Shown here piece after piece: positions 4,652 to 39,277 of a stretch of DNA of 39,277 nucleotides (the stretch's first letter is position 1; each line of letters begins with the position of its first letter). The DNA lies in assembly GCA_038496445.1 (NCBI GenBank), contig JALMLS010000147.1:1-39277 (forward strand). Reading direction: 5' to 3'. A program made the translations under genes and the position numbers. This stretch comes from Trichosphaerium sp. ATCC 40318. Lineage: Eukaryota; Protista; Tubulinea. The notes beneath the pieces were generated by a model. It made no database searches, was not told the DNA's origin, and saw only the letters and a list, made by a program, of their open reading frames with translations.

Positions 4652-4665
4652 TAAGCTTACTTATC

Positions 4666-8448: not shown

Positions 8449-8805
8449 ATGTGCCAATAAAATAAAATAAATAGTTAACTTTTTATTTTATTTTATTGGC
8501 ACATTTATTCTTTAGGCTCTTGTTTTTTTTTTTGTTTTTTTGGTATGTAAAAAACACTGTGTAGGGTGGGGAATTTTGTTTTTTTGGTATAAAAAAAAAA
8601 CAAAATAGATAATTTATGAGAAGAAAAAAGCCTAAAGAATAAAATTCCCCACCCTAGGCGGAAAAAACTTAAATAAATAGTGGTATATTTTCTATTATTA
8701 TACCACTATTTATTTAAGTTTTTTCCGCCTACGGCAAGTATCGCTATTCGAATAGTTATAATATATATAAGTAAAAAAAAGTATTAATATAGACTTATAT
8801 ATAAG

Positions 8806-10180: not shown

Positions 10181-10184
10181 ATTA

Positions 10185-11122: not shown

Positions 11123-11207
11123 TAATTAAAAAAAAACAAAAAAAAACGTGCCATTTTTTTATTATTTCATCAACAATTTTAGAATTTTCCATGATAAGTA
11201 AGCTTAT

Positions 11208-12628: not shown

Positions 12629-12632
12629 TAAT

Positions 12633-14007: not shown

Positions 14008-14364
14008 CTTATATATAAGTCTATATTAATACTTTTTTTTACTTATATATATTATAACTATTCGAATAGCGATACTTGCCGTAGGCGGAAAAAACTTAAA
14101 TAAATAGTGGTATAATAATAGAAAATATACCACTATTTATTTAAGTTTTTTCCGCCTAGGGTGGGGAATTTTATTCTTTAGGCTTTTTTCTTCTCATAAA
14201 TTATCTATTTTGTTTTTTTTTTATACCAAAAAAACAAAATTCCCCACCCTACACAGTGTTTTTTACATACCAAAAAAACAAAAAAAAAAACAAGAGCCTA
14301 AAGAATAAATGTGCCAATAAAATAAAATAAAAAGTTAACTATTTATTTTATTTTATTGGCACAT

Positions 14365-16232: not shown

Positions 16233-16251
16233 AATCTTATTTCTAAAAAAA

Positions 16252-17649
16252 TTAGTTTGTCTTTTTTGAAATAAATATCAATAATTTCTTCACATACCCA
16301 TTGATCAACAAACCGCAATGTATTCATCTATTTATTCTTATCTTTAATTTAACTCCATCGCTGTATATTTGCTTCTGTAAAATTCCAATTTTTTTCCATT
16401 TTATATTCTGGTATAGACCATATTGCTTTCATCAGTTGTTCATTCAACAAACGTGAACCTTTCTTATACGGAGTATACATGCTTTTAATGTCCTATAACC
16501 TTCTCCTACACCCAGCATTGCTAATTTTCTCATAGGATATTCGCTACGTGTTAAATGTATTCAATTTCAACCAAAATGATTAAGATTTCAATACATTTTT
16601 CCAAAATTAAAAAAAAATTCACTACGTGAAACTGGTTCAGCATCGTTCTCTAAATCTTTTTCATATCTTTTTTTTGGTGGCGAAATTGCAAACTCTTCAC
16701 CTCTTTCTTTAGCAATAATATCTTGTTTAAACTCCTCACTTTTTATTAAAGACATTTCTAAATATTTATATACATTTTCATCTTTACATCATTTATCTAA
16801 TGCACCAGGACCTAGTTTAAAATTTCTAAAAGATCTGTTGGATACTTTTTGTTTATATATATAATTTCTTCCCTTTGTATAGTATCTTTTGGCTTTAATA
16901 TAATTTAATAAATATTTATCTCTCAATTTTTTATCTCTTTTTAATTTAAAATTAATTCTATTCATTAATTTACCTAATTTTGTTAATTTTTTCTTTTGTT
17001 TTTTTGAGTCCTCTCAACTTATACCATGTACTTTTTCATAATTTATTGCTGGCATGGGCACAGCAACAACTTCCTTGCTTCCCGTATAAAAATTTGGTAC
17101 CGTTATATATAATTGTTCGGATTCATCTCCGGATAACTTTCTATCATAGTAATATAATCCGTAGCTACTTCATTTCTTGCATCCAAACCATTTATCTGCA
17201 TTCTGTACCGCACCTTATCTAATTTTATTCTTTCTTTGTACGCATTCATAATCTCCAATTTATCATGAATATATCTAGGTACTCTTCAAGGCTCTTTCTA
17301 ACCAAATCTGCTCTGCCTCTACCAGCAACTATAACCTACAAAAAACTCACTTTCCCAAAAATTCATCTACTAAGCTCCCTTTTATTTAGCAAGACGTTTT
17401 TGGTATATAACGAATCAACTCCATATAAAGTTCTTCTAAAAACCACAAAGGAATTAAAGATAAATACTTTGGCATTGGCTTTTTAGTCCATTTTAACAAT
17501 ATTATATATTCTATAAATCATAAAAATAAAAAACTAATCAAACAAAGAACCTACAATACTAGGTAAAATAACCATAAAACATTTAACTTAAAATTAGAAC
17601 CTAAATCCAACAATTTTTTAAAAACCAATCCTATAATAATTATGTTCAT
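16252..17649 (-). CDS. Mirror copy of the unknown gene at 22412-23809
   Basis: Reverse complement within inverted repeat 1. Confidence 0.48.
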
Positions 17650-17697
17650 TTTTATAAAAACTCTATTATCTACATTTATTAAATTAACTTATATAAA

Positions 17698-18465
17698 TTA
17701 AATGATTTTAAATCCTCTTAAAAAAATTACCAAATAAATAAATAATAGCTGTCTTTCTTTAACAAACTTAATAATGCTTAATTTCCGTACTTTCTTTTTA
17801 AATTTCGCTTTATTTTCATCCAAATTATATATATTTAATAAATCATAAGAATATTCTAAATCTTTTAAAATATCATTAAACGTATAATTTTCTAATTTAT
17901 ATATTTGTAACATGTCATATATATAATTATATATATTTAAAATATCATCAAAAGTATAACTATCTAATTTATATTTTTTTAATATGTCATGTATATAATT
18001 ATATATATTTTTATTATTTCAAAGAGTAAAAATATATACATCTAATTTATATAATTTTAATATATCATATATATATATATAATCGTAAAAATTTATATTA
18101 GTATTATTTCAAAGAGTAAAAATATATACATCTAATTTATATAATTTTAATAATTTATAAAAATAAAAATCTAATAAAAAAAAATTCAAATTTGAATTAC
18201 CTAAATCATATAAATTTAAAAAATCTTTATAGAAAAAATTATTAGATTTTAAATAAAAATAAATAGAATCAAATTTACCTAAATTATATAATTTTAATAT
18301 ATCATAAGAATTAAAATGGAGAAAGAAAAAAAGGGAATCCAAAAATATTGTTTTATAACTGACAGCAGGATTTAAATTTAAATCCTGCTGTCAGTTATAA
18401 AACAATATTTTTGGATTCCCTTTTTTTCTTTCTCCATTTAATTTAAAAATATAATTTCTATACAT
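17698..18465 (-). CDS. ORF255 mirror copy
   Basis: Reverse complement of 21596-22363. Confidence 0.62.
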
Positions 18466-18590
18466 ATTTTTTCTTTTTTTTAAGTCTATATAAGAAGATA
18501 AATCCTGATAATTTTAACCTTGTAACTTATCCCTTCACATTTGGTGTTTTTATTAAGGATCTATCAAATATTCTTTATTTTTTTTTATTT

Positions 18591-19956
18591 TTATTTTAGT
18601 ATTCTATCACTATACACCATTCATAATTTATACCCAATAACTCCCAAAACGTATATTAAATAAACTATAATAAAATACTCCCATCCAAAATACATCTTAA
18701 ATTAATGCCGGATCTTTTTATAGTTTTACATAATAACTTAAGCTTCTAGTTTACTAAATCAGCTCATTTTGCTATATACCATATTCACTAAAATCATTCA
18801 AATTATACCAATTAATATATCTTTAGCTGTTATAAACTATCTATTTTTTTATTTTGCATTCTCTTATAAAATTACTTTTATTATAAATTAAACTCATTTT
18901 TCTTGGCACTTTTTAATATTGCAGAACTTAATACAATTCTTTATTTTCCAACCTTAACCGGGAGTATCCTTTCTCAATCTGATTTTTCTTGATAATTTAC
19001 ATCCAATCATTAAATAAATAACCCGATATATTTTTTAACTTTTTGGTTTGATTTTGCTTTAACTTAGTTAAAGCAAAATCAAACAAACCGCCCTTTCAAT
19101 AACGTGTCACATCTTGCACCATCTATTAATTTGCCTGATAATACACTTCATCTACCTTTTCACAACGCTTAGCATAACTATAAAACGTAAGCTATATTTA
19201 AGCAACTATCTGGATTTCACGTACTAACTAGATAAGAATACCATCTATTCAATTCTCTAAATATAATTTACGTCCATGTATATCTTGCATGTACAAACAA
19301 ATCTATCTAGTTTCCATTATGATTGAATCACTCGTGAAAAATAATACCCAAGATCAAAAAATTGAATTTCTTTCCATTAACACTGATATTCCTCTGGAGC
19401 CCCTTTAAAGGCTTTTTATAATATTCCAAAATAAATCATCTTCAAAAATAAACCTATTACATGTATACACTGCCCAAAAATAATACAACTCATAAGTGCG
19501 GTATATTTTCTACAGGACTTCTTCCTCTATCATATCATAATAACTAAAATCTACCCATCTCTCATACCTCAAGCATTTCTACATTTACCCTTCTACATTC
19601 AAATTTTCTAACATATTTATACTACTCTTTCATAAATGAACATTCATCCATATCTGCTTCAACCCAGCTAAAGCTTCGTCCCTATTCAATCATATAAATT
19701 ATTTTCCGGAGATTCAAATCTTTATCTTCCGTTGAACTAAATATTCCTTACCATATCTTCAAAATAAATTTCCAAATCCACTATATCTTCTCATATTCAT
19801 CATCTGGATCTTGTTCCGCGTCACTTTTAAACCATAATAGGATTTTATCCCGTATGAATATCAGGCACTTCATCAAAAAGAAAACTGAACCTGATGCTAC
19901 ATCTCACTATTATCCAAATTATATCTGCTGCCTTCTGCACATTTGATTTTTCTTGT
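18591..19956 (-). CDS. Mirror copy of the unidentified cryptogene
   Basis: Reverse complement of 20105-21470. Confidence 0.42.
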
Positions 19957-21470
19957 TTTTGAGAGAGTATGATCCAGAAATGGATTCGATGTGCGGGATG
20001 ATCTTGTGTCTAGTTATATACAGGTGAACAAATAGTTGAGATTTTGATGAAGAATTTATGATGACTTAGATGCTATAGAGAACGTGTTTTAATGTTACTT
20101 ATATACAAGAAAAATCAAATGTGCAGAAGGCAGCAGATATAATTTGGATAATAGTGAGATGTAGCATCAGGTTCAGTTTTCTTTTTGATGAAGTGCCTGA
20201 TATTCATACGGGATAAAATCCTATTATGGTTTAAAAGTGACGCGGAACAAGATCCAGATGATGAATATGAGAAGATATAGTGGATTTGGAAATTTATTTT
20301 GAAGATATGGTAAGGAATATTTAGTTCAACGGAAGATAAAGATTTGAATCTCCGGAAAATAATTTATATGATTGAATAGGGACGAAGCTTTAGCTGGGTT
20401 GAAGCAGATATGGATGAATGTTCATTTATGAAAGAGTAGTATAAATATGTTAGAAAATTTGAATGTAGAAGGGTAAATGTAGAAATGCTTGAGGTATGAG
20501 AGATGGGTAGATTTTAGTTATTATGATATGATAGAGGAAGAAGTCCTGTAGAAAATATACCGCACTTATGAGTTGTATTATTTTTGGGCAGTGTATACAT
20601 GTAATAGGTTTATTTTTGAAGATGATTTATTTTGGAATATTATAAAAAGCCTTTAAAGGGGCTCCAGAGGAATATCAGTGTTAATGGAAAGAAATTCAAT
20701 TTTTTGATCTTGGGTATTATTTTTCACGAGTGATTCAATCATAATGGAAACTAGATAGATTTGTTTGTACATGCAAGATATACATGGACGTAAATTATAT
20801 TTAGAGAATTGAATAGATGGTATTCTTATCTAGTTAGTACGTGAAATCCAGATAGTTGCTTAAATATAGCTTACGTTTTATAGTTATGCTAAGCGTTGTG
20901 AAAAGGTAGATGAAGTGTATTATCAGGCAAATTAATAGATGGTGCAAGATGTGACACGTTATTGAAAGGGCGGTTTGTTTGATTTTGCTTTAACTAAGTT
21001 AAAGCAAAATCAAACCAAAAAGTTAAAAAATATATCGGGTTATTTATTTAATGATTGGATGTAAATTATCAAGAAAAATCAGATTGAGAAAGGATACTCC
21101 CGGTTAAGGTTGGAAAATAAAGAATTGTATTAAGTTCTGCAATATTAAAAAGTGCCAAGAAAAATGAGTTTAATTTATAATAAAAGTAATTTTATAAGAG
21201 AATGCAAAATAAAAAAATAGATAGTTTATAACAGCTAAAGATATATTAATTGGTATAATTTGAATGATTTTAGTGAATATGGTATATAGCAAAATGAGCT
21301 GATTTAGTAAACTAGAAGCTTAAGTTATTATGTAAAACTATAAAAAGATCCGGCATTAATTTAAGATGTATTTTGGATGGGAGTATTTTATTATAGTTTA
21401 TTTAATATACGTTTTGGGAGTTATTGGGTATAAATTATGAATGGTGTATAGTGATAGAATACTAAAATAA
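19957..21470 (+). CDS. Unidentified putative cryptogene (acidic, frequently frameshifted), 5'-truncated
   Basis: Codon-like segments linked by single missing bases, e.g. SDAEQDPDDEYE [g]aa DIVDLEIYFEDMVRN; PENNLYD tg[g] NRDEALA gg[g] VEADMDECSFMKE. It has the same G-over-C strand skew as nad2 and nad4. Boundaries are approximate. Confidence 0.45.
20977..21015. repeat. 19-bp stem with a 1-nt loop
   Basis: GTTTGATTTTGCTTTAACT A AGTTAAAGCAAAATCAAAC. Confidence 0.85.
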
Positions 21471-21595
21471 AAATAAAAAAAAATAAAGAATATTTGATAG
21501 ATCCTTAATAAAAACACCAAATGTGAAGGGATAAGTTACAAGGTTAAAATTATCAGGATTTATCTTCTTATATAGACTTAAAAAAAAGAAAAAAT

Positions 21596-22363
21596 ATGTA
21601 TAGAAATTATATTTTTAAATTAAATGGAGAAAGAAAAAAAGGGAATCCAAAAATATTGTTTTATAACTGACAGCAGGATTTAAATTTAAATCCTGCTGTC
21701 AGTTATAAAACAATATTTTTGGATTCCCTTTTTTTCTTTCTCCATTTTAATTCTTATGATATATTAAAATTATATAATTTAGGTAAATTTGATTCTATTT
21801 ATTTTTATTTAAAATCTAATAATTTTTTCTATAAAGATTTTTTAAATTTATATGATTTAGGTAATTCAAATTTGAATTTTTTTTTATTAGATTTTTATTT
21901 TTATAAATTATTAAAATTATATAAATTAGATGTATATATTTTTACTCTTTGAAATAATACTAATATAAATTTTTACGATTATATATATATATATGATATA
22001 TTAAAATTATATAAATTAGATGTATATATTTTTACTCTTTGAAATAATAAAAATATATATAATTATATACATGACATATTAAAAAAATATAAATTAGATA
22101 GTTATACTTTTGATGATATTTTAAATATATATAATTATATATATGACATGTTACAAATATATAAATTAGAAAATTATACGTTTAATGATATTTTAAAAGA
22201 TTTAGAATATTCTTATGATTTATTAAATATATATAATTTGGATGAAAATAAAGCGAAATTTAAAAAGAAAGTACGGAAATTAAGCATTATTAAGTTTGTT
22301 AAAGAAAGACAGCTATTATTTATTTATTTGGTAATTTTTTTAAGAGGATTTAAAATCATTTAA
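21596..22363 (+). CDS. ORF255: unknown Tyr/Leu/Lys-rich protein with internal degenerate repeats (YDILKLYKLD-like)
   Basis: ATG 21596 to TAA 22363 is open in code 4 and joins the supplied 77-aa and 71-aa ORFs through TGA codons. It reads through a 126-bp palindrome. Confidence 0.65.
21622..21747. repeat. Perfect 126-bp palindrome with no loop, inside ORF255
   Basis: Centre GATTTAAA|TTTAAATC at 21684/21685; mirrored at 18314-18439. Confidence 0.95.
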
Positions 22364-22411
22364 TTTATATAAGTTAATTTAATAAATGTAGATAATAGAG
22401 TTTTTATAAAA

Positions 22412-23809
22412 ATGAACATAATTATTATAGGATTGGTTTTTAAAAAATTGTTGGATTTAGGTTCTAATTTTAAGTTAAATGTTTTATGGTTATTTTACCT
22501 AGTATTGTAGGTTCTTTGTTTGATTAGTTTTTTATTTTTATGATTTATAGAATATATAATATTGTTAAAATGGACTAAAAAGCCAATGCCAAAGTATTTA
22601 TCTTTAATTCCTTTGTGGTTTTTAGAAGAACTTTATATGGAGTTGATTCGTTATATACCAAAAACGTCTTGCTAAATAAAAGGGAGCTTAGTAGATGAAT
22701 TTTTGGGAAAGTGAGTTTTTTGTAGGTTATAGTTGCTGGTAGAGGCAGAGCAGATTTGGTTAGAAAGAGCCTTGAAGAGTACCTAGATATATTCATGATA
22801 AATTGGAGATTATGAATGCGTACAAAGAAAGAATAAAATTAGATAAGGTGCGGTACAGAATGCAGATAAATGGTTTGGATGCAAGAAATGAAGTAGCTAC
22901 GGATTATATTACTATGATAGAAAGTTATCCGGAGATGAATCCGAACAATTATATATAACGGTACCAAATTTTTATACGGGAAGCAAGGAAGTTGTTGCTG
23001 TGCCCATGCCAGCAATAAATTATGAAAAAGTACATGGTATAAGTTGAGAGGACTCAAAAAAACAAAAGAAAAAATTAACAAAATTAGGTAAATTAATGAA
23101 TAGAATTAATTTTAAATTAAAAAGAGATAAAAAATTGAGAGATAAATATTTATTAAATTATATTAAAGCCAAAAGATACTATACAAAGGGAAGAAATTAT
23201 ATATATAAACAAAAAGTATCCAACAGATCTTTTAGAAATTTTAAACTAGGTCCTGGTGCATTAGATAAATGATGTAAAGATGAAAATGTATATAAATATT
23301 TAGAAATGTCTTTAATAAAAAGTGAGGAGTTTAAACAAGATATTATTGCTAAAGAAAGAGGTGAAGAGTTTGCAATTTCGCCACCAAAAAAAAGATATGA
23401 AAAAGATTTAGAGAACGATGCTGAACCAGTTTCACGTAGTGAATTTTTTTTTAATTTTGGAAAAATGTATTGAAATCTTAATCATTTTGGTTGAAATTGA
23501 ATACATTTAACACGTAGCGAATATCCTATGAGAAAATTAGCAATGCTGGGTGTAGGAGAAGGTTATAGGACATTAAAAGCATGTATACTCCGTATAAGAA
23601 AGGTTCACGTTTGTTGAATGAACAACTGATGAAAGCAATATGGTCTATACCAGAATATAAAATGGAAAAAAATTGGAATTTTACAGAAGCAAATATACAG
23701 CGATGGAGTTAAATTAAAGATAAGAATAAATAGATGAATACATTGCGGTTTGTTGATCAATGGGTATGTGAAGAAATTATTGATATTTATTTCAAAAAAG
23801 ACAAACTAA
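22412..23809 (+). CDS. Unknown gene or 5' part of the large ORF: sparsely frameshifted hydrophobic N-terminus, then ~320 open codons
   Basis: ATG at 22412. Successive protein-like segments can be linked by adding one base at a time. The frame 22847-23809 is open in code 4 (…ADKWFGCKKWSSYG…SKKTN*). Confidence 0.5.
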
Positions 23810-23828
23810 TTTTTTTAGAAATAAGATT

Positions 23829-25696
23829 ATGTCTAACGATAAAAAAAGATGACATAGATCTTTTTTTATTCTTTTTGGGTTACGTGGTTGTGGAAAAGAA
23901 GCTCGTTATAAAAAATCGGAACAATTAGGAGAGTTGGCTTATGTGTGAGATTATTGTTTTATTCCAGCAGATTGAAATCGTTATAGACAATATGGTGCAA
24001 AATGATGATTACTGTTCAAATATTATTATCCAGTAAGATACACATGAATAGATTATTATAGATCATTTATGAGAACAACCGATGATGCTAATGTGTTTGG
24101 TTTATATAGTTTAAGGTTATTGGGAGATTATAGTGTGGTATATTCTTATTATTATAGAAAACTTATGAATTTTCCATATCATCGTGTAGTATATGCTAGA
24201 GAAAATTTAAATTTAAATCGATTTTGAAAAGGAAAAAAAAAAAAAAATATAAAAATAAATAGATTAAGTTATTGATGAGAGTTTTATTTAAAAAAAGAAT
24301 CAAATTTAAATAAAAAAGAATTTAAAAATTTAAAAGAAGATCAAAAATATAAATTATATATAGAAAAAATAAAAAAAGAGACAAAATTGATTAGATCGAC
24401 AGATTTATTTTTAAAAGAAATACCTGATTTATTTAATTTTTTGGGTGATTCCATAGTAAAAATTAGAAATTCAAAAATAAATAATATAAATTATATAAAA
24501 GAAAAAGCAAGAAAATGAAGCGAGGTGACGTCACCTAAATTTTTTATTAAAGAAATAGAAGAAAAAAAAAACAAGGAGCAAATGAAAATATTAAAAAAAT
24601 ATGAAAAAGAATGAATAAAAGAAAACAATATAGATATTTTAGATGAGACATATGAAGAAAAAAGGAAAGCTATAGCAAGAAAATTAGAAAAAAAAACGCA
24701 AAAAATTCTAACTAAAGATCTTTATATTTTATGAAAAATTTTAAATACATATAATAATAAAAAAAGAAAATTTAGAGATATAATGAATTTTAAAAAAGAT
24801 ATTTATACTTTAAATAATTATGAGTTGCTAGTTTTGGATTATTTTGAATATAAAATTCAGAAATTGATGCTTAAAAAATTTTATTTATTAGGTTTAAGTT
24901 ATAAGAAAGAAAGTAAAATAAAATTTGTAATGCATTATGGGAAAATGTTTGATTTATTTTTTCATTTAAGAAGAGATCAGCAAGAATTAGAAAGACGTTT
25001 ATATAGAAGGGTTTTTAATATAGATTTAAGATATAGAGAAGGTATATCTGAAATTGAATATAAAATGTTTCCGGAAATTGATGAAAATAAAAAGTTAAGA
25101 AGCTCTAATAATCTAAGTAAAAAAAATGAGAAAAGTTTAGAAATTATTTGAAGAGATTTGGGCAAAAGATTAAAAAAAAAAAAAAATTTCAAAAAAAAAA
25201 ATATTAATTGAACATTAAAAAGAAATAAGATAAATACCTTATTTGGTAATGATTTTTATATTAAAAAATGAAATAAAAAACGAGGTAATTTTTTTATTTG
25301 AGTCTTTAAAAAAACACCGTCTAAGTGGAGTTTTTTTAAAGATGTTATAGTAGAACCTATAAAAGAGTTATGAGATAATTTTTATGAAGATATGGTAATA
25401 AAATTCAATGATTTTAAAGAAGATACTTATTATCCATGAAAAGAGGATTTTTATCATCAACTTACCATAGAAGCTGAAGCATTAAGAGAATTAAATGAAG
25501 AAAATTTAGGAGGTAAGAGTAATAACTTTATAACAAGGTTGCGAACAAGATGAGCTGCTTATTTTGATGAAGTATCTCAAAGAAAAGTTAAAATAGAAGA
25601 AAAGCCAGAGGCTGAGTTTGACGAGGTTTGAAGAAAAAAAAAAGAAATAGAGTGAGATAATTTATGGGAAAAAAAAAACAAGAGCCTAAAGAATAA
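23829..25696 (+). CDS. ORF of ~622 aa, Lys/Glu/Trp-rich, unknown function; no editing-type frameshifts
   Basis: The frame is open from 23730 if TGA=Trp (MSNDKKRWHRSFF...LAYVWDYCFIPADWNRYRQ...EIEWDNLWEKKKQEPKE). It includes the supplied 122-aa ORF. The terminal poly-A differs by 1 nt between copies, so the stop is taken from copies 1-3. Confidence 0.75.
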
Positions 25697-26003
25697 ATGT
25701 GCCAATAAAATAAAATAAATAGTTAACTTTTTATTTTATTTTATTGGCACATTTATTCTTTAGGCTCTTGTTTTTTTTTTTGTTTTTTTGGTATGTAAAA
25801 AACACTGTGTAGGGTGGGGAATTTTGTTTTTTTGGTATAAAAAAAAAACAAAATAGATAATTTATGAGAAGAAAAAAGCCTAAAGAATAAAATTCCCCAC
25901 CCTAGGCGGAAAAAACTTAAATAAATAGTGGTATATTTTCTATTATTATACCACTATTTATTTAAGTTTTTTCCGCCTACGGCAAGTATCGCTATTCGAA
26001 TAG
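25669..26003. repeat. Intergenic hairpin cluster between the large ORF and nad2 (possible termination, processing or origin region); present in all five copies
   Basis: 112-bp palindrome at 25669-25780 (1 mismatch) spanning the stop codon; TAGGGTGGGGAATTTT (25810-25825) pairs with 25889-25904; 33-bp stem at 25903-25935/25947-25979; CTATTCGAATAG at 25992-26003. Confidence 0.85.
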
Positions 26004-26053
26004 TTATAATATATATAAGTAAAAAAAAGTATTAATATAGACTTATATATAAG

Positions 26054-27428
26054 ATGGCTAATCTATTTTATTTTTATTTAGAAGAGAGATTCTTATTTTA
26101 TTTTTATTTGGTGATTAATTTTTGGTACTAGTTTACAAATTTGAGGAAAAAGTGCAGGATTCTTGCAAAAGATTTAGGATTATTATGTTTTGTTTTTCAA
26201 TTTTAAGCTTTAGTTGTGCGCGTTAATGCAGTGATATGACTGGATCAAACTTATTTTGATGCTTCGGTTGTATCTATTTAAAAGTGTTATAGTGTGCTTC
26301 TTTTTTTTTTTGACTTCTATGAGGAAAGTGATTCCTACAATGGTGTTTACTTAATTTATGTATATGTTATGTAGTTTTTTAATATTATCGTTTTCGAGTT
26401 GTTGTGTTGTTGAGTTGTTTTAGAATTATTAGAATTTGTTTCTATATTTTATTAAGTGTAGGTCGAATAAAGTTTCTAAATCTGAGCAGCCCTAAAATAT
26501 TTAATTTTTAATAAATTAGCTCAGGATTTATTTTTATAGGTTGTGTTATTTTTTGACTTAAGAGTTCATGTGGTCGTATAAGTTTATAGAGTGGGTGTGG
26601 ATTTTTATATTTGGATGGTTTATTATCGTAGGGTTATCTCTATTTTTATGTGTTTATTTATAAAATTAGGGATATTTCCGTTTAATTTTTGATTGTTGAT
26701 AGCTATGAGGCAGGTTCTTTGGGGCTTTAAGTATTTTAACAGTAGTAAGTAAAATAGTGACCTTGATGTTTTTTTGAAAGTATTTTTTGTATTGATACAA
26801 ATTGAAGAAATAAGTCAATAATAACAGTATTTTCAGTTATTAGCATGTGGTTTTTGTATTTTTAGGTGTTAGTCAAATAAGATTAGAAGAATTTGAGCGT
26901 ATAGCTCAGTGTAAATTTAAGTTATTTATTATTAGCATGTAATACTGCATCTCATTTAGTTTTTTATGTATTTTAATTTATTTGGTATTTATATGCTTGT
27001 AAGCATGGGTTTTTTTTTAATTTGTTTATTTTGTTAAGTCATTTACAAAATAGAGTATAGTAAATATGTTAGATTTTTTAAATTTAATCATATAGCGTTT
27101 CGTGAAGTATATTTTTTTGATTAAGTTTTTTATCTGTAGCAGGATTACCTCCGCTAATGGCTTTTTTTCTAAATTTTTGTTAATATCGAGTTTATTAGCG
27201 GTAGTGATTGATTACTTGCTATATTTTGCATTTTAGTCGTATTTTTGCATTAAGTTTTATTTAAACGTTTTCAAGGATTCCTGTTTGGTAAATTTTGAGG
27301 ATGAGGCTTATATATAAGGCGAGACGAAATATTTATTATATGTTAGCTTTTTTTTTATGGCTAATATTTTATTTATTTTAATTATGATGTTTTATTTTTA
27401 TTGATATAGATATGTTAATTTAATTTAA
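26054..27428 (+). CDS. nad2: NADH dehydrogenase subunit 2, cryptogene (needs many single-nt insertions; TGA=Trp); best-quality copy
   Basis: Motifs read after restoring one base: tct ga[g] gca gcc cta aaa tat = SEAALKY; FIKLGIFPFNFW(tga) tt[g] VDSYEAG; KIRRIW(tga)AYSS; LSVAGLPPLM g[g]c FFSKF. ATG at 26054. The stop at ~27426-27428 is approximate because the frame depends on the insertions. Confidence 0.9.
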
Positions 27429-27432
27429 ATTA

Positions 27433-28853
27433 ATGACAAATTGACTTTTAATTTTGGGTAATAGGGATTGCGTGTTATTTTTTTAGTATATATAAATGTT
27501 ATATTAGTTGGCTTTTTTTATTTTATTTTTTTGTGATACTGAGTTATTTTATATTTTTAGTTACATAGGTAATTTTTTTAGGAGGAACAGAGGATTGGAT
27601 GTGACGTTTGTCTTATCTTTTCATATTTTAAGCAGCAGTTTGTTTATATAGGTAAGCTCCTTAATTGGGATCGCAAGTATAGAATAATAGTTTTATTTTT
27701 ATGCTTTTAGCATAACTTGTTGTGCGCAGGTGCTTTTTTAGTATATGATCTTATTTTTTTTTATATTATTTTTGAGTTTTTTTAATACCTCTTTTTTTTT
27801 TTATAGGTATTTGAGGTACTAAAAAGCGACGGTAATAGCATCCTTTAAATTATTTTTATATACGTATTAGGATCTTTTTCTATGCTTATAGGTTAATGTC
27901 TTTATATTCTCAAGTGGTACATTTGATCTGTATACCTTATTTTATATAATAATAGTTTTCAGCGAGATTAGGTACATGTATTTTATTTTTAACAGCATTT
28001 GCTGTTAAACACCCATGTATCCATTTCATTTATGTTACCCGAAGCACATGTAGAGGCAACAACAGTAGGTTCGGTTATTTTAGCAGCTTGATTTTAAAAT
28101 TAGCTTGTATGGGCTGTGTAGATTTGTTATTCTTTGTTTTTTGAATCTATAAAATATATGCGCCTTTATTTTTTGTAATTATAATAATTGTATTTTACAT
28201 AGTGTATGTTTATCGTGTAGACATGTGATGTTAAAAAAGCATAGCTTATATGTCTATAGCACATATGATTTTAGTTTGATTGGTTTGTTTTCGTTAAATA
28301 TAGTAGGTGTGCAAGATGCATTTATTTATTAGTAGGACATGGTTAGTATCGAGTGGTTATTTATTTTAGTAGGTATTTTATATGATAGTTTAAAACTCGT
28401 GTTATTTTTTATTATGGAGTATAAGTCAAATAATGCCATTATGGCATTATTTTATTTTATGTTTATTTTTGCTAATTTTGGTTTTCCTGTTTTTTAAATT
28501 TTGTGGAGAACTTTTAATTTTTTTTTCTTGTCTTTATATAGTTTTTTATTAAGTTTTTTTTTATGTTTAGGTATGTTATATCTACAGGGGCTAGTGTATG
28601 AATGTATAATAGGATAGTTTTTGGGAAGTTAAATACGAAGGCATATTAAAAAAGGTTTGAAAAGAAGTCAAAGAGAAAAAAATTGAAGATTAATGGGAGT
28701 AGTAGAGGTTGGTTGATTAGTACGTATGGTCGTACAGATTTAACTTGGCGTGAATTAATATTTTATGCTTTTTATTATGTACCGTGTAATATTAGGAATA
28801 TTACCATGGTTTGGGAATTCAGCGTTGGTCATTTTATACTACTAACAGAATAA
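27433..28853 (+). CDS. nad4: NADH dehydrogenase subunit 4, cryptogene (needs many single-nt insertions; TGA=Trp); best-quality copy
   Basis: YDLIFFYIIFE, IGIW(tga)G, PMYPFHL tg[g] LPEAHVEA, VGSVILA g[g]c LILKL g[g]c LYG, R ca[g] CDVKK.IAYMSIAHM, GHG.VSSG.F, YD ag[g] FKTR, NFGFP g[g]t FLNF.GE, W(tga)MYNRIVFG, DLTWRE. The stop position is approximate. Confidence 0.93.
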
Positions 28854-28868
28854 ATAAGCTTACTTATC

Positions 28869-29891
28869 ATGGAAAATTCTAAAATTGTTGATGAAATAAT
28901 GGAAAAAATGGCACGTTTTTTTTTTGTTTTTTTTAATTGCCTAAAAAGCAAAAAAAGCAAAGGGGCCTACGTGTCTATACCAGGATTGATATTAGAACCT
29001 CAAAATTTAGAGGAGGTTATACATAATAGGTTCATTTTATTAGGAGTAACAAGTGTATTATTTATAGTTTGTTTAGGTTTTGCTGCAGGTTTTTATTATA
29101 ATAGTAATAATCATATAATCTCTGTAGATATGGACTGTATTGATCAGGTGCTTCGCTATAATTTAGGGTATAAAAATTTAAAAAACGATGTGAATCTTGA
29201 GAATTGTGAAGCATATTTTGAACCGCAAAATATATTAATATTACCAGCTTTTGAATTTGAAGATCCAGATTTAGATTTAGACGAAAAAATAATTGAGGGA
29301 ATTTTAGAATTGCAGCAACAAATACCAAAAGTAGAGGTAGAGTTAGACGTTGCAAGTGAAACAGTAAAAATAATGGAGCAAGCTTTAGAGTCTTACAATT
29401 GAGGTAATTATAGAGAAAATATAGTAAATATCGAAGATGAACCTACTTATCAAGGGACAGAAAATTTTCAAGGATATAATAATCCAAATTTAGATGAGTT
29501 ATTGTCAGATGCAATAGCTTCATCTAAATTTAATGTATCTGATGAACTAGATGATAGTTCATCAGATACATTAAATTTAGATGAAGCTATTGCATCTGAT
29601 GGTTCAAATGAAATTTTTGAGAATATTGTGACTTTTGAGGAAGAAGATTATGGAGGAAAAGATACTTTAGAAGGAATTGACATAGTGTTTCCCGGAGAAA
29701 ATCAACTGGTAAGGGAAATTGGTGAAAATATTGATGGAAATTTATATTGTAGTTATGAAGAAAATATGGTAGGTTGTTATGATTGTTTAAATGAAACTAC
29801 TCAGATTTTTTTAGATATGGATAATGATTTTTTTTTATTTGTTGAAATATTAAAAAAAGTTATATATTTTTTAATATCTATTTTTTTTTAA
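28869..29891 (+). CDS. ORF340: unknown acidic protein with hydrophobic segments near residues 55-77 and at the C-terminus; no frameshifts
   Basis: The supplied 177-aa and 129-aa ORFs are in the same frame and are joined by TGA (29400-29402) plus 33 sense codons. In code 4 this is 1023 nt, ATG to TAA. Confidence 0.8.
29505..29599. repeat. 45-bp perfect stem with a 5-nt loop, inside ORF340
   Basis: TCAGATGCAATAGC…GAACTA gatga TAGTTC…GCTATTGCATCTGA. Confidence 0.95.
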
Positions 29892-30755
29892 TATTTTATT
29901 TTATATTTTTTATTTAAAAAAAGAGAATGTTATTTGTATTATAAATGAATATTTAAAAAGATAGTTATTTGTTTATAATTTTTTATAGTTTCAACTAAGA
30001 AGCGAAATTAAAAATAAATTAATTCTTTATTTTTTTTTTTTTTTTTTTAGATAGCTTTTATTTTTTTTTATATTTTTGTTTTTCTTCATTTTATTTTTTT
30101 AAATAAATTTTATAATATTTTACATTTTATAAAAATATTAAACCTTTTTTTTATTCTTTTTTTTTTTTTTAATTTTTTTAATTAATCATTTAAATTTTAA
30201 TTTAAAAATCTCTTTAGTTTGTAAACTTATTTGTTCTACGTATTTTCTTTTAATTTCATAATAAAAAAAAAGAAGAGATTTTATATTAAATTTGATTCTT
30301 CTTTTTTTCTAATAACTAAAAATTTAAAAAACTTATGATTAAAATTTTTAATCATTTTAATCATTTTATTTTTTAATATTAATATCATAAGTTTATTTAA
30401 CTTATATTTTCTTTTTATTTTCTTAATCTCTTTTTTTATATCTTTTTTTTTGCTTTATTATTTTTTTAATCTCTTTTTTTATTGCTTTTTTTTTTTTCCT
30501 AAGTTTTTTAAAAAATTTTTTTCTTTTTTTTTTAATCTCTTCTTTTTTTTTCAATTTTTTTTGTTTTATTCTTTCTTGCCTGCGATCTCATGCTCTTTTT
30601 TTTCTAAAATAACCTTTTGTATATCTACCTACTAAAAATTTTAATACCTTTTTTTTTTTTTTTCTTTTTTTTAATATTCTTTTTATTTTATTACCTTGAC
30701 TTTTTTTGGTTTTTAAAATTTTTATTTTAGAATTAAAAATTTTTATTTTATATTT

Positions 30756-30840: not shown

Positions 30841-31413
30841 TTATTTTTTCTTTCCTTTTTTTTGTTTTTTTTTCTTCTCCTTTCTAAAATATAAAAAATA
30901 CTGACGTCGTAAGTATTTTTTATATATTTTACTTGGTTTTTTTACTATTCTTTTTATTTTTTTTAATAAAAACCTTTTTCTAATGTAACGTTTATGAAAA
31001 AACAATGAAGGTTTTAAAATTATATTTTTTACGTGATATTTTATTAAGTCAAAGTTTTCTTTCTTTTTTAGATAGTCAATACACGTTGGACGTACGTCCA
31101 ACGTGTATTGACTATCTAAAAAAGAAAGAAAACTTTGACTTAATAAAATATCACGTAAAAAATATAATTTTAAATTACTTTCTTTAATTTTACTTTTAAT
31201 TTTACCTACTAAATCAATATTAAAACTAACTTCTTTTCTTTCTTTTAAACATGTATTTATACCTTCACTTTTATTTGTTTCTTTTAGATATGTATTTATA
31301 CCTTCACTTTTATTTGTTTCTTTAAAAAAGATCCTATCGCGATTTTTTAAAGAAATATCCAGGTTTTTTCTTACTAGTAAAATTAAAGAGACCCAAAGGT
31401 TGTTTTTTTTCAC
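30841..31413 (-). CDS. ORF190: basic Lys-rich unknown protein containing a 162-bp palindrome and a duplicated KETNKSEGINT
   Basis: Supplied ORF. The start codon is uncertain (GTG inside a hairpin loop; frame open back to ~31467). Confidence 0.4.
   Translation of the reverse strand: MKKNNLWVSLILLVRKNLDISLKNRDRIFFKETNKSEGINTYLKETNKSEGINTCLKERKEVSFNIDLVGKIKSKIKESNLKLYFLRDILLSQSFLSFLDSQYTLDVRPTCIDYLKKKENFDLIKYHVKNIILKPSLFFHKRYIRKRFLLKKIKRIVKKPSKIYKKYLRRQYFLYFRKEKKKKQKKGKKK
31013..31174. repeat. Perfect 162-bp palindrome inside ORF190
   Basis: Centre ACGT|ACGT at 31093/31094; the same peptide is encoded on both strands. Confidence 0.95.
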
Positions 31414-31778
31414 AAATAACCTTTGGGTCTCTTTAATTTTACTAGTAAGAAAAAACCTGGATATTTCTTACTAAGGTTATCTAATATTATTTCTTCGCTG
31501 GTATACTTAATTTTAAATTAATTTAAAATTAAGTATACCAGCGAAGAAATAATATTAGATAACCTTAGTAAGAAATATCCAGGTTTTTTCTTACTAGTAA
31601 AATTAAAGAGACCCAAAATTAATGACTTAATTACTATTAAATTTTTATCGATAGGTAAGCGGGATATAAAGTTTACGTCTCTCTTTTAGTTAACTAAACA
31701 AAGACGTAAACTTTATATCCCGCTTACCTATCGATAAAAATTTAATAAAGCGGGATATAAAGTTTACGTCTTTGTTTT
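31350..31778. repeat. Cluster of overlapping palindromes
   Basis: 52-bp stem at 31350-31401/31418-31469; perfect 196-bp palindrome at 31422-31617; 46-bp stem at 31635-31680/31702-31747 followed by a third partial arm copy at 31748-31777. Confidence 0.92.
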
Positions 31779-31854: not shown

Positions 31855-33260
31855 TAATTTATTTTTAAAATAAGTTTATTTTTTATAGGCAATTTTACCT
31901 TCTATAACGTCCACTAATATGTAATTTATTTAATTTATTGCTTATTTTTTCTGGTTTCTTATTTCACGATATAATACAAAATTTGCTTACTATTAAGATA
32001 TTTTCTTAAAATTAATTACGCTTACCTTTTCATAAAGTTTTTCAAAAAGATTACTACGACGTGGTATAAACTTCTAAACACTTTTACATAAAAATATAAA
32101 CACGTATAAAAAAACTTAAAATATCAAAAAATAAACCGAAAACGAATGATTTAAATTTTCCATTTTACCAACCCTAATCTAACTAAATTATTCCTATTTT
32201 TTCAAAATATAATACAAAATTTAGCAAAACAAAATATAAAACTTTGCTATTTTAAAAAACGCCTCAATTAACACCTAAAAACCACCCTTACGTAAAAACT
32301 TATAATTAATATAAAAACTCTAAATTTCTTGCACAAAATTCTTAATTTATAAACATAACCAAGTTTATAGAAGCTTTTCTTCCTTCATATAAGTTAACTT
32401 AAACCTCACATTTGATCTATTTTGGCTAATTTTTGTTTATTAAATTGATCTCCATAAAACGAGAACACTATAAAACACACATTACGACTACTATAACAAG
32501 TATATAACCAAGTTTTACAAAACAACTATATATCACCATTGATCATAAACATATCAAGGCATATTCATACCTTAAATCAGCTAAACCCCTATTAAATAAT
32601 AAATAAACTGTGTTGGAGGATAACGAACAAAAAAAGATTTAAGGGAATGATTTTAAAACTAACATATTTAAATATCGCTTATTTTTAGGTTGTTTAAACA
32701 ACCTAAAAATAAGCGATATTTAAATATGTTAGTTTTAAAATCATTCCCTTAAATCTTTTTTTGTTCGTTATCCTCCAACACATAAATAACCTTTTAAAAA
32801 ACTTTAATATCTAGATGATTACTCTGTATTTTTTTAGAGAATTGTTGCGTTACCAAAAAATTAATTTTTTGGTAACGCAACAATTCTCTAAAAAAATATC
32901 ACTAGTTAGTAATTCAAAACTAAATTTCTTTTTTTCAAAACATAAAGAAACCTTTTGTTATAGCAACTCAGTAAAACCATCACTTCAGCATTACAATTAA
33001 AACTATAATTATTACCACTTAGCTATACCATTTATCCAAATACATCCACCTACATAACCATCCATGTAGTCATACCTACACAATATCTGTTTGACACACT
33101 AAAGATGCCCTATTAAAATTATATGCTTCATTATAACACGTAAACCGTCGTAACCTAATCACAAAGAATAAAAACAATAGGTCTTACTCTTTTTTTAAAA
33201 TGTAAACTATATTATTAAAATCTTCTTTTAACCAACCTACAATGCTAAACCTAAAAACAC
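31855..33260 (-). CDS. Possible divergent, frameshifted ribosomal-protein genes (rpl14-like near 33260-33000, rps14-like near 32080-31855)
   Basis: The minus strand is G-skewed like the other cryptogenes. Fragments VIRLRR..FNRASLV..CVG..LHG and PRR..LYE..KP..HISGRYR.V weakly resemble uL14 and uS14 in the usual S10-spc order. The similarity is weak and judged by eye. Confidence 0.22.
32609..32898. repeat. Two perfect palindromes: 174 bp (32609-32782) and 72 bp (32827-32898)
   Basis: Centres GTTT|AAAC at 32695/32696 and AATT|AATT at 32862/32863. Confidence 0.93.
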
Positions 33261-33453
33261 TTAAATATAAAAAAAAAAATAAAAGCTATCTAAAAAACAA
33301 AAAAAAATAAAATAAAGAACTTAATTTATTTTTAATTTCGCTTCTTCCCTTGAAACTATAAAAAATTATAAACAAATAACTATCTTTTTTAAATATTCAT
33401 TTATAATACAAATAACATTCTCTTTTTTTAAATAAAAAATATAAAATAAAATA

Positions 33454-34476
33454 TTAAAAAAAAATAGATATTAAAAAATATATAACTTTTTTTAATATTT
33501 CAACAAATAAAAAAAAATCATTATCCATATCTAAAAAAATCTGAGTAGTTTCATTTAAACAATCATAACAACCTACCATATTTTCTTCATAACTACAATA
33601 TAAATTTCCATCAATATTTTCACCAATTTCCCTTACCAGTTGATTTTCTCCGGGAAACACTATGTCAATTCCTTCTAAAGTATCTTTTCCTCCATAATCT
33701 TCTTCCTCAAAAGTCACAATATTCTCAAAAATTTCATTTGAACCATCAGATGCAATAGCTTCATCTAAATTTAATGTATCTGATGAACTATCATCTAGTT
33801 CATCAGATACATTAAATTTAGATGAAGCTATTGCATCTGACAATAACTCATCTAAATTTGGATTATTATATCCTTGAAAATTTTCTGTCCCTTGATAAGT
33901 AGGTTCATCTTCGATATTTACTATATTTTCTCTATAATTACCTCAATTGTAAGACTCTAAAGCTTGCTCCATTATTTTTACTGTTTCACTTGCAACGTCT
34001 AACTCTACCTCTACTTTTGGTATTTGTTGCTGCAATTCTAAAATTCCCTCAATTATTTTTTCGTCTAAATCTAAATCTGGATCTTCAAATTCAAAAGCTG
34101 GTAATATTAATATATTTTGCGGTTCAAAATATGCTTCACAATTCTCAAGATTCACATCGTTTTTTAAATTTTTATACCCTAAATTATAGCGAAGCACCTG
34201 ATCAATACAGTCCATATCTACAGAGATTATATGATTATTACTATTATAATAAAAACCTGCAGCAAAACCTAAACAAACTATAAATAATACACTTGTTACT
34301 CCTAATAAAATGAACCTATTATGTATAACCTCCTCTAAATTTTGAGGTTCTAATATCAATCCTGGTATAGACACGTAGGCCCCTTTGCTTTTTTTGCTTT
34401 TTAGGCAATTAAAAAAAACAAAAAAAAAACGTGCCATTTTTTCCATTATTTCATCAACAATTTTAGAATTTTCCAT
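33454..34476 (-). CDS. ORF340, second intact copy
   Basis: Reverse complement of 28869-29891. Confidence 0.8.
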
Positions 34477-34491
34477 GATAAGTAAGCTTAT

Positions 34492-35912
34492 TTATTCTGT
34501 TAGTAGTATAAAATGACCAACGCTGAATTCCCAAACCATGGTAATATTCCTAATATTACACGGTACATAATAAAAAGCATAAAATATTAATTCACGCCAA
34601 GTTAAATCTGTACGACCATACGTACTAATCAACCAACCTCTACTACTCCCATTAATCTTCAATTTTTTTCTCTTTGACTTCTTTTCAAACCTTTTTTAAT
34701 ATGCCTTCGTATTTAACTTCCCAAAAACTATCCTATTATACATTCATACACTAGCCCCTGTAGATATAACATACCTAAACATAAAAAAAAACTTAATAAA
34801 AAACTATATAAAGACAAGAAAAAAAAATTAAAAGTTCTCCACAAAATTTAAAAAACAGGAAAACCAAAATTAGCAAAAATAAACATAAAATAAAATAATG
34901 CCATAATGGCATTATTTGACTTATACTCCATAATAAAAAATAACACGAGTTTTAAACTATCATATAAAATACCTACTAAAATAAATAACCACTCGATACT
35001 AACCATGTCCTACTAATAAATAAATGCATCTTGCACACCTACTATATTTAACGAAAACAAACCAATCAAACTAAAATCATATGTGCTATAGACATATAAG
35101 CTATGCTTTTTTAACATCACATGTCTACACGATAAACATACACTATGTAAAATACAATTATTATAATTACAAAAAATAAAGGCGCATATATTTTATAGAT
35201 TCAAAAAACAAAGAATAACAAATCTACACAGCCCATACAAGCTAATTTTAAAATCAAGCTGCTAAAATAACCGAACCTACTGTTGTTGCCTCTACATGTG
35301 CTTCGGGTAACATAAATGAAATGGATACATGGGTGTTTAACAGCAAATGCTGTTAAAAATAAAATACATGTACCTAATCTCGCTGAAAACTATTATTATA
35401 TAAAATAAGGTATACAGATCAAATGTACCACTTGAGAATATAAAGACATTAACCTATAAGCATAGAAAAAGATCCTAATACGTATATAAAAATAATTTAA
35501 AGGATGCTATTACCGTCGCTTTTTAGTACCTCAAATACCTATAAAAAAAAAAAGAGGTATTAAAAAAACTCAAAAATAATATAAAAAAAAATAAGATCAT
35601 ATACTAAAAAAGCACCTGCGCACAACAAGTTATGCTAAAAGCATAAAAATAAAACTATTATTCTATACTTGCGATCCCAATTAAGGAGCTTACCTATATA
35701 AACAAACTGCTGCTTAAAATATGAAAAGATAAGACAAACGTCACATCCAATCCTCTGTTCCTCCTAAAAAAATTACCTATGTAACTAAAAATATAAAATA
35801 ACTCAGTATCACAAAAAAATAAAATAAAAAAAGCCAACTAATATAACATTTATATATACTAAAAAAATAACACGCAATCCCTATTACCCAAAATTAAAAG
35901 TCAATTTGTCAT
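34492..35912 (-). CDS. nad4: nad4 cryptogene, copy 5
   Basis: Reverse complement of 27433-28853. Confidence 0.9.
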
Positions 35913-35916
35913 TAAT

Positions 35917-37291
35917 TTAAATTAAATTAACATATCTATATCAATAAAAATAAAACATCATAATTAAAATAAATAAAATATTAGCCATAAAAAAAAAGCT
36001 AACATATAATAAATATTTCGTCTCGCCTTATATATAAGCCTCATCCTCAAAATTTACCAAACAGGAATCCTTGAAAACGTTTAAATAAAACTTAATGCAA
36101 AAATACGACTAAAATGCAAAATATAGCAAGTAATCAATCACTACCGCTAATAAACTCGATATTAACAAAAATTTAGAAAAAAAGCCATTAGCGGAGGTAA
36201 TCCTGCTACAGATAAAAAACTTAATCAAAAAAATATACTTCACGAAACGCTATATGATTAAATTTAAAAAATCTAACATATTTACTATACTCTATTTTGT
36301 AAATGACTTAACAAAATAAACAAATTAAAAAAAAACCCATGCTTACAAGCATATAAATACCAAATAAATTAAAATACATAAAAAACTAAATGAGATGCAG
36401 TATTACATGCTAATAATAAATAACTTAAATTTACACTGAGCTATACGCTCAAATTCTTCTAATCTTATTTGACTAACACCTAAAAATACAAAAACCACAT
36501 GCTAATAACTGAAAATACTGTTATTATTGACTTATTTCTTCAATTTGTATCAATACAAAAAATACTTTCAAAAAAACATCAAGGTCACTATTTTACTTAC
36601 TACTGTTAAAATACTTAAAGCCCCAAAGAACCTGCCTCATAGCTATCAACAATCAAAAATTAAACGGAAATATCCCTAATTTTATAAATAAACACATAAA
36701 AATAGAGATAACCCTACGATAATAAACCATCCAAATATAAAAATCCACACCCACTCTATAAACTTATACGACCACATGAACTCTTAAGTCAAAAAATAAC
36801 ACAACCTATAAAAATAAATCCTGAGCTAATTTATTAAAAATTAAATATTTTAGGGCTGCTCAGATTTAGAAACTTTATTCGACCTACACTTAATAAAATA
36901 TAGAAACAAATTCTAATAATTCTAAAACAACTCAACAACACAACAACTCGAAAACGATAATATTAAAAAACTACATAACATATACATAAATTAAGTAAAC
37001 ACCATTGTAGGAATCACTTTCCTCATAGAAGTCAAAAAAAAAAAGAAGCACACTATAACACTTTTAAATAGATACAACCGAAGCATCAAAATAAGTTTGA
37101 TCCAGTCATATCACTGCATTAACGCGCACAACTAAAGCTTAAAATTGAAAAACAAAACATAATAATCCTAAATCTTTTGCAAGAATCCTGCACTTTTTCC
37201 TCAAATTTGTAAACTAGTACCAAAAATTAATCACCAAATAAAAATAAAATAAGAATCTCTCTTCTAAATAAAAATAAAATAGATTAGCCAT
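35917..37291 (-). CDS. nad2: nad2 cryptogene, copy 5
   Basis: Reverse complement of 26054-27428. Confidence 0.88.
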
Positions 37292-37648
37292 CTTATATAT
37301 AAGTCTATATTAATACTTTTTTTTACTTATATATATTATAACTATTCGAATAGCGATACTTGCCGTAGGCGGAAAAAACTTAAATAAATAGTGGTATAAT
37401 AATAGAAAATATACCACTATTTATTTAAGTTTTTTCCGCCTAGGGTGGGGAATTTTATTCTTTAGGCTTTTTTCTTCTCATAAATTATCTATTTTGTTTT
37501 TTTTTTATACCAAAAAAACAAAATTCCCCACCCTACACAGTGTTTTTTACATACCAAAAAAACAAAAAAAAAAACAAGAGCCTAAAGAATAAATGTGCCA
37601 ATAAAATAAAATAAAAAGTTAACTATTTATTTTATTTTATTGGCACAT

Positions 37649-39277
37649 TTATTCTTTAGGCTCTTGTTTTTTTTTTTCCCATAAATTATCTCACTCTATT
37701 TCTTTTTTTTTTCTTCAAACCTCGTCAAACTCAGCCTCTGGCTTTTCTTCTATTTTAACTTTTCTTTGAGATACTTCATCAAAATAAGCAGCTCATCTTG
37801 TTCGCAACCTTGTTATAAAGTTATTACTCTTACCTCCTAAATTTTCTTCATTTAATTCTCTTAATGCTTCAGCTTCTATGGTAAGTTGATGATAAAAATC
37901 CTCTTTTCATGGATAATAAGTATCTTCTTTAAAATCATTGAATTTTATTACCATATCTTCATAAAAATTATCTCATAACTCTTTTATAGGTTCTACTATA
38001 ACATCTTTAAAAAAACTCCACTTAGACGGTGTTTTTTTAAAGACTCAAATAAAAAAATTACCTCGTTTTTTATTTCATTTTTTAATATAAAAATCATTAC
38101 CAAATAAGGTATTTATCTTATTTCTTTTTAATGTTCAATTAATATTTTTTTTTTGAAATTTTTTTTTTTTTTTAATCTTTTGCCCAAATCTCTTCAAATA
38201 ATTTCTAAACTTTTCTCATTTTTTTTACTTAGATTATTAGAGCTTCTTAACTTTTTATTTTCATCAATTTCCGGAAACATTTTATATTCAATTTCAGATA
38301 TACCTTCTCTATATCTTAAATCTATATTAAAAACCCTTCTATATAAACGTCTTTCTAATTCTTGCTGATCTCTTCTTAAATGAAAAAATAAATCAAACAT
38401 TTTCCATAATGCATTACAAATTTTATTTTACTTTCTTTCTTATAACTTAAACCTAATAAATAAAATTTTTTAAGCATCAATTTCTGAATTTTATATTCAA
38501 AATAATCCAAAACTAGCAACTCATAATTATTTAAAGTATAAATATCTTTTTTAAAATTCATTATATCTCTAAATTTTCTTTTTTTATTATTAATGTATTT
38601 AAAATTTTTCATAAAATATAAAGATCTTTAGTTAGAATTTTTTGCGTTTTTTTTTCTAATTTTCTTGCTATAGCTTTCCTTTTTTCTTCATATGTCTCAT
38701 CTAAAATATCTATATTGTTTTCTTTTATTCATTCTTTTTCATATTTTTTTAATATTATCATTTGCTCCTTGTTTTTTTTTTCTTCTATTTCTTTAATAAA
38801 AAATTTAGGTGACGTCACCTCGCTTCATATTTCTCTGCTTTTCTTTTATATAATTTTATATTATTTATTTTTGAATTTCTAAATTTTTACTATGGAATCA
38901 CCCAAAAATTAAATAAATCAGGTATTTCTTTAAAAAATAAATCTGTCGATCTAATCAATTTTGTCTCTTTTTTTATTTTTTCTATATAAATTTTATATTT
39001 TTGATCTTCTTTTAAATTTTTAAATTCTTTTTTATTTAAAATTTGATTCTTTTTTTAAGAATACAACTCTCATCAATAACTTAATCTATTTATTTTTTAT
39101 ATTTTTTTTTTTTTACCTTTTCAAAATCGATTTAAATTTAATTTTTCTCTAGCATATACTACACGATGATATGGAAAATTCATAAGTTATTTCTATAATA
39201 ATAAGAATATACCACACTATAATCTCCCAATAACCTTAAACTATATAAACCAAACACATTAGCATCATCGGTTGTTC
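37649..39277 (-). CDS. ~622-aa ORF, copy 5 (runs off the window end)
   Basis: Reverse complement of ~24071-25696, noisier toward the edge. Confidence 0.7.

Follow-up and report, generated by a model that had tools for sequence, protein, structure and literature searches.

The window analysed here is a stretch of 39,277 nucleotides (nt) from Trichosphaerium sp. ATCC 40318 (assembly GCA_038496445.1, contig JALMLS010000147.1, positions 1 to 39,277 of the forward strand), and the genes under study are its nad2 and nad4, which sit between two intact open reading frames (ORFs) of 662 and 345 codons. The window has a G+C content of about 25% and a strong excess of G over C on the coding strand (base counts in nad4: T 655, A 402, G 258 and C 126). 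It is mitochondrial DNA (mtDNA), and nad2 and nad4 are cryptogenes, in which unbroken runs of reading frame extend over only 5-29 residues. The two genes and the spacer between them are laid out as follows:

26054-27413, forward strand: nad2 cryptogene, delimited by frameshift-aware alignment to the NuoN of an ordinary protist contig (L003, see below)
27414-27432, forward strand: nad2-nad4 spacer, with a 10-nt insertion or deletion (indel; 27414-27423) relative to the homologous contig of a relative (L002, see below)
27433-28845, forward strand: nad4 cryptogene, delimited by profile alignment

The start codon of nad2, ATG 26054, is the point at which cross-species conservation begins, and the end of the gene is uncertain, lying somewhere within 27381-27413. 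The C-terminus of Nad4 reads ...ILGILPWF...YY and is followed by TAA 28843-28845, which is probably the stop codon; the preliminary description of this DNA had placed the end of nad4 at 28853, the stop of a different frame. No other standard mitochondrial genes were recognised in the window with the references at hand, and searches of the window for tRNA genes (ARAGORN) and rRNA genes (Rfam) gave none.

In a three-frame translation, the motifs of Nad4 were scattered over all three frames yet stood in the correct order. For nad4, the region 27430-28870 was aligned in a frameshift-aware manner to a profile of 120 Nad4/NuoM proteins, with TAA and TAG forbidden. A model permitting only missing bases required 43 codons short by one base and scored 1270, compared with 913 for a model permitting only extra bases, and when both types of shift were allowed (40 missing-base and 5 extra-base events) the score rose by only 8 units. 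The shifts in nad4 are thus essentially all of one missing base, in line with the earlier claim that the frame is lost repeatedly in this direction while the motifs are kept; counts of shifts forced by stop codons alone did not reveal the direction. Frameshift-aware alignment, which the preliminary description had proposed, uncovered dense missing-base sites in both genes: nad4 needs about 36-43 missing bases, approximately one per 35 nt, and nad2 about 35-42, for a combined number of about 75 sites. Within 27730-28630, where some 27 sites had been counted by hand, alignment to a single NuoM yielded 29, and the individual sites listed previously (28033, 28086, 28103, 28222, 28315, 28387, 28419, 28489 and, in nad2, 27160) were all verified in position. 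In this DNA-based alignment, single-nucleotide insertions were sufficient for nad4, and neither deletions nor substitutions were needed. Once the missing bases were restored, a path free of TAA and TAG spanned the full length, as had been asserted from the hand reading. The repaired Nad4 (485 amino acids, aa) was 41-47% identical to Nad4 of protists (E about 1e-104), with a top match of 46% identity over 366 aa (E = 5e-104), the identity being slightly inflated, since similarity was maximised at about 40 codons when the protein was put together. It matched the 120 Nad4/NuoM proteins, which carry PF00361 (Proton_antipo_M), over their full length and with the motifs in order.

When the tail of nad4 was searched against 1.8 billion representative proteins, a single match was obtained, a 72-aa ORF in the unedited frame (P0001) on a 3.6-kb Logan contig from run SRR28397362; a nad4 tail piece searched against a set of 5.8 billion proteins returned the same ORF only. 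The contig (L002) is DNA-like, was assembled independently and stems from a relative that is about 94% identical in nad2/nad4. Over approximately 2.75 kb of nad2 and nad4, no indel separates the relative from the window, and the indels that do occur are confined to the region upstream of nad2 (near 25966 and 26046), the spacer (27414-27423) and the positions just after nad4 (28854-28859). With reading frames fixed by homology to the window alone, the substitutions at codon positions 1, 2 and 3 of the shifting frames numbered 25, 7 and 51 in nad4 (chi-square p = 2e-8) and 24, 9 and 52 in nad2 (chi-square p = 5e-8), and in any fixed frame their distribution over codon positions was flat for both genes. 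Synonymous and non-synonymous differences stood at 46:27 in nad4 and 54:28 in nad2, and the divergence was 62/240 at four-fold sites and 5.6% at codon positions 1-2. The lack of coding indels together with the third-position bias shows that both species keep every break and that selection acts on the repaired reading. This comparison shows that nad2 and nad4 are under purifying selection in their repaired, shifting frames, and it bears out the initial view of them as functional cryptogenes that need single-nucleotide insertions.

The identity of the missing base was addressed at each break by adding up the profile likelihoods of every base at every insertion slot in the vicinity, also under a neighbour rule by which the inserted base repeats an adjacent templated one. 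Sites of particular interest are:

28103, forward strand: templated G to be doubled, at the invariant glycine (Gly) of KLG.YG (posterior for G 0.96-0.99)
28341-28342, 28355, 28419 and 28489 in nad4 and 27160 in nad2, forward strand: further equivalent sites with G required or favoured
28222, forward strand: site that does not look like G, at which CA + A gives the conserved glutamine (Gln) of RQ.D.KK (posterior for A 0.97, neighbour rule)

Under the neighbour rule, the posterior for G reached 0.98 at 27606 (Gly of GIDG), 1.0 at 28033 (tryptophan (Trp) of HLWLPEAH, doubled G 28034) and 0.99 at 28387 (arginine (Arg), doubled G 28388); it was 0.84-0.97 at 28315 and 0.75 at 28086, both Gly. At the KLG.YG site, the ordinary nad4 of L003 reads ...TATGGTTACC... 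where the window reads ...TATGTTACC..., and an inserted C would give alanine at invariant Gly codons and cysteine, serine or leucine at Trp codons. Judged from these codons, the invariant Gly, Trp and Arg residues of nad4 (27606, 28033, 28086, 28103, 28315 and 28387) demand a G beside a templated G, which agrees with the preliminary description as far as the best-constrained sites are concerned. Among the 11 confident sites, G accounted for 5-6 and C for one; at all 11, a base identical to its neighbour restored the conserved residue at a cost of 0.1-1.0 bits, weakly conserved sites being uninformative in this respect. Three weaker sites in nad4 fitted T.

T accounts for 45% of the positions, and raw scores of single-base models therefore do not tell G and T apart. 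In an opportunity-matched test of nad4, the G-only model scored 1006, a value that none of the 40 size-matched sets of random positions (929 +/- 39) attained, and the same test with E. coli NuoM and BLOSUM62 gave 396 against 310 +/- 60 (0 of 30 reached G). The A-only and T-only models fell below 97-100% of their random sets, and the C-only models were the lowest-scoring single-base models. In nad4, repair points are enriched at positions next to a G. Where edited codons of the window and the relative differ, seven of the differences were synonymous and two non-synonymous when read with G (the synonymous ones include GGC/GGT, GGA/GGT, GGG/GGT and AGG/CGG), compared with 1:5 under the A model and 2:6 under the T model. 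The base 3' of the doubled G varied in 6/24 G[G]N codons, which corresponds to the rate at four-fold sites and not to that at codon positions 1-2, which places the gap before the third base; the inserted base itself is not named thereby. Amino-acid composition did not discriminate among the bases beyond a slight Gly excess of the G-only reading.

In both cryptogenes and intact ORFs, the genetic code has to be considered, and one codon of nad4 is informative:

28599-28601, forward strand: TGA codon read as Trp, on column 399 of the Nad4 profile, which is invariantly Trp (score 11.4)

This placement upholds the earlier assignment of TGA to Trp. Read in this way, the intact ORFs of the window comprise 662, 345, 320 and 271 codons and contain 1-23 in-frame TGA each. 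The longest (23730-25715), previously given as about 622 aa, is open as had been stated, and so is the ORF that follows nad4:

28854-29888, forward strand: intact ORF of unknown function (ORF345), directly 3' of nad4, with 340 codons from ATG 28869 (the earlier ORF340) and one in-frame TGA

The 662-codon ORF has 23 TGA and 2 TGG codons, and its Trp content of 3.8% is unusually high. ORF345 has no frame breaks and thus appears unedited. A piece of it used as protein query returned no homologs; Pfam gave zero matches for the intact ORFs of the window, and exact look-ups of four window ORFs found none on record. Where the window has ORF345, the relative carries an unrelated ORF (2911-3585 of its contig), so that the intact ORFs look like variable cargo and not like core genes. 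They seem to be exempt from editing and are perhaps mobile cargo.

A comparison of 26054-28853 with the window by blastn revealed further copies of the nad2-nad4 stretch:

11208-14007, reverse strand: identical inverted copy
34492-37291, reverse strand: second identical copy
1853-4651, forward strand: near-identical copy
8806-11124, forward strand: truncated copy

The stretch is therefore present three times at 100% identity (26054-28853, 14007-11208 and 37291-34492), confirming that the sites recur across the repeated copies. The copies at 1853-4651 and 8806-11124 deviate mainly by indels in A/T homopolymers, that is, in A/T runs and not at the inferred insertion sites; the latter copy is in addition scrambled over a brief segment around 28311-28354, not far from 28375, where it is cut off. 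Only at 23730-25715 does the 662-codon ORF stay open; the copies at 14368-16331 and 194-1492 are broken by single-base indels, which suggests that some assembly copies are less well polished. On a larger scale, the window is pieced together from a few segments that recur in direct and inverted orientation. The segments 11119-19956 and 20105-28943 are inverted relative to each other (99.9% identity) about a centre near 20030; 24073-30159 returns in inverted orientation at 33163-39277, with about 3 kb of unique sequence between the two; direct copies are also present at 1-5776 and 6963-11124; and one nad4 copy ends at 28375, where it is fused to an inverted copy at 11119-11124. This structure may be real multi-isomer or palindromic mtDNA, or a product of long-read assembly. 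The window is also rich in palindromes that are perfect or nearly so, have arms of 36-98 nt and often lack a spacer (31422-31617, 32609-32782, 31013-31174, 18309-18444, 21617-21752, 25669-25780, 29505-29599, 32827-32898 and 25900-25982), one of them inside ORF345 and another just upstream of nad2, where the contig of the relative ends. In Rfam, the palindromes score below threshold as microRNA-like hairpins; they may serve in recombination or replication. The segment 19957-21470 spans the palindrome centre and its G+C content climbs to 31%; it showed neither an rRNA match nor similarity to the few references compared.

With a scaffold carrying three placed nad4 pieces, 8000 candidates were scored, and the 120 listed among them were ordinary Nad4 relatives of the scaffold, with none from this clade. 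A DNA pattern scan of metagenome contigs yielded a single ordinary protist nad4, that of L003 (VFQM010000242.1), a 66-kb contig on which cox1, nad2, nad4 and nad5 have ordinary frames. The Nad4 of this contig shares 53-55% identity with its counterparts in Naegleria and Stachyamoeba, so that the contig is probably a protist mitochondrial genome. Two pattern scans of viral contigs gave nothing, and neither did scans of genome and viral contigs with back-translated P0001.

Insertional editing is the only reasonable reading of the cryptogenes. We favour, with a probability of about 0.7, editing of the type reported from the heterolobosean amoeba BB2, in which the nucleotides that are absent from the DNA at intervals of about 35 nt would be added to the transcript. 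In this scheme, the mitochondrial RNA polymerase would read one template base twice during transcription (stutter), and the inserted base would duplicate a templated neighbour, in most cases G and less often A, C or U, as in BB2. Insertion at the RNA level and the share of G among the insertions are what we infer from DNA; polymerase stutter and an overall G majority are likewise suggested by the match to BB2. Around 12 well-placed sites, no common motif was visible by eye apart from a G with flanking A, T or C.

A number of results weigh against editing of this type. An edited nad2/nad4 transcript or product was not retrieved in searches of large protein sets. At least three sites are better explained by A or C, namely 28222, 28268, where A yields the asparagine of the HMN motif (posterior for A 0.98, neighbour rule), and 28132, where C yields a conserved proline (posterior for C 0.90, neighbour rule); the notion that only G is inserted has to be abandoned, even if the Gln at 28222 could also arise from G should a neighbour match not be needed. 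The best-scoring unconstrained assignments in nad4 were G 13, T 13, A 11 and C 6 of 43, that is, about one third G, and the expected counts over 29 sites were G 10, T 8.5, A 7.9 and C 2.7. A G-only reading would contain 8.3% Gly, above the family maximum of 7.9%, suggesting that not every site is G. In an earlier run with 60 random sets, the maximum was 1034 and exceeded the 1006 of G, so that the enrichment of G has a p of about 0.01-0.03 and is not overwhelming, and G did not stand out in nad2 (244; median 248), where the comparison with a single distant reference has no power. The base counts, the Gly excess and the lack of a G preference in nad2 would fit the same general editing without a strong G majority, in which G, A, U and C are all often inserted, whether neighbour-copied or not. 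We regard this as unlikely: A and T positions performed worse than random sets of equal size and G positions better, the majority of A and T calls concern columns of weak conservation, in which all bases score alike, and the A and T models turn the species differences at edited codons into mostly non-synonymous ones. The proposal of G-dominated insertion draws on the enrichment of G-adjacent positions in nad4, but not on the best assignments or on nad2, and the share of G among the insertions is not fixable from DNA alone.

Editing of the Physarum type (MICOTREM), co-transcriptional, non-templated, mostly of C and independent of neighbours, would make the organism a myxomycete or myxomycete-like. 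It would suit the G+C content of about 25%, a spacing near the ~25 nt of Physarum and the position of cryptogenes beside intact unassigned ORFs (PMC10048350), but it is very improbable, given that C was found at only one of the confident sites and is unable to restore Gly at 27606, 28103 and 28315, Trp at 28033 or Arg at 28387, that models with C anywhere scored below those with G anywhere (1128 vs 1169 and 1275 vs 1330), and that insertions in Physarum are of one C, one U or a dinucleotide and not of one G (PMC10048350). Despite the AT content, the spacing and the unedited ORFs, C insertion of this type was rejected on the strength of the Gly, Trp and Arg sites. Even less credence is given to a ribosome that would re-read one base at each break of an mRNA identical to the DNA, a programmed frameshifting at some 40 sites per gene. 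The window holds no rRNA or tRNA gene by which such recoding could be excluded directly, a further point against the editing reading; the 12 contexts inspected, however, share no slippery or stop-hungry motif, and about 40 shifts per gene without a motif would leave a negligible yield of full-length protein. The least credible explanation is that the copies are dead (pseudogenes or mitochondrial DNA inserted into the nuclear genome) or that the breaks are errors of long-read assembly. The assembly is indeed imperfect, the window being a mosaic in which some copies differ by homopolymer indels. Against this stand the three identical copies, the independent assembly of the relative that shares every break without a coding indel, the strong third-position bias in the shifting frames and the location of copy-to-copy indels in A/T runs, away from the inferred sites.

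In the literature searched, neighbour-copying insertional editing has been published for one organism only, BB2, and its mechanism and its rule of site recognition are unsolved. A second case, about three times denser, would allow a comparison, and here a close sequenced relative shares every site: the approximately 75 sites of nad2/nad4 are fixed between two species that differ at one quarter of their four-fold sites. Whether neighbour-copying, G-biased editing evolved here independently of BB2 and at a density like that of Physarum is a tentative idea that we consider somewhat doubtful; if true, the choice of sites would be strongly constrained, and the species pair would offer a comparative system for the siting of polymerase stutter. 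Mitochondrial genomes of this kind are unreadable to standard annotation, and their genes risk being labelled as pseudogenes or assembly errors.

Among known systems, the U editing of kinetoplastids likewise involves cryptogenes that are unreadable as DNA, but it is confined to U, also deletes nucleotides and takes place post-transcriptionally under the direction of guide RNAs, whereas here no deletions are required and the Gly and Trp codons cannot be restored by U. The P gene of paramyxoviruses resembles the present case in that G is added beside a templated G during RNA synthesis by polymerase stuttering; the virus, however, has one A(n)G(n) site and adds a variable number of G, compared with dozens of sites per gene here, mostly at single Gs without a homopolymer tract. 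MICOTREM of Physarum, whose mechanism is co-transcriptional (PMC10048350), shares the dense single insertions (about every 25 nt in Physarum), an AT-rich mtDNA and cryptogenes beside unedited unassigned ORFs (PMC10048350), and differs in inserting mostly C, with some U and dinucleotides, and in lacking a neighbour rule, while the constrained sites here need G. In BB2, 475 sites have been described, all of them single insertions, 84% of which are G and each of which repeats a templated base next to it. The efficiency of editing there exceeds 99%, and a stuttering of the mitochondrial RNA polymerase in the course of transcription has been proposed as the mechanism (Yang et al. 2017, PMC5421314). 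BB2, which the preliminary description had already named, is the right comparison, with single insertions and G at constrained sites (PMC5421314), here read from DNA. In addition, each base inserted at a well-placed site could be a copy of its neighbour, the sites lack a motif, nad2 and nad4 are adjacent, and the mtDNA carries large inverted repeats (49 kb in BB2). Differences concern the G+C content (25% here, 30% in BB2), the unassigned ORFs, which are intact here whereas all four in BB2 are edited, and the density, which at about one site per 35 nt is approximately threefold that of BB2, where 309 sites in 40 protein genes correspond to an estimated one per 100 nt or more. The nad2 and nad4 genes described here would thus be a second, denser member of the BB2 kind of editing.

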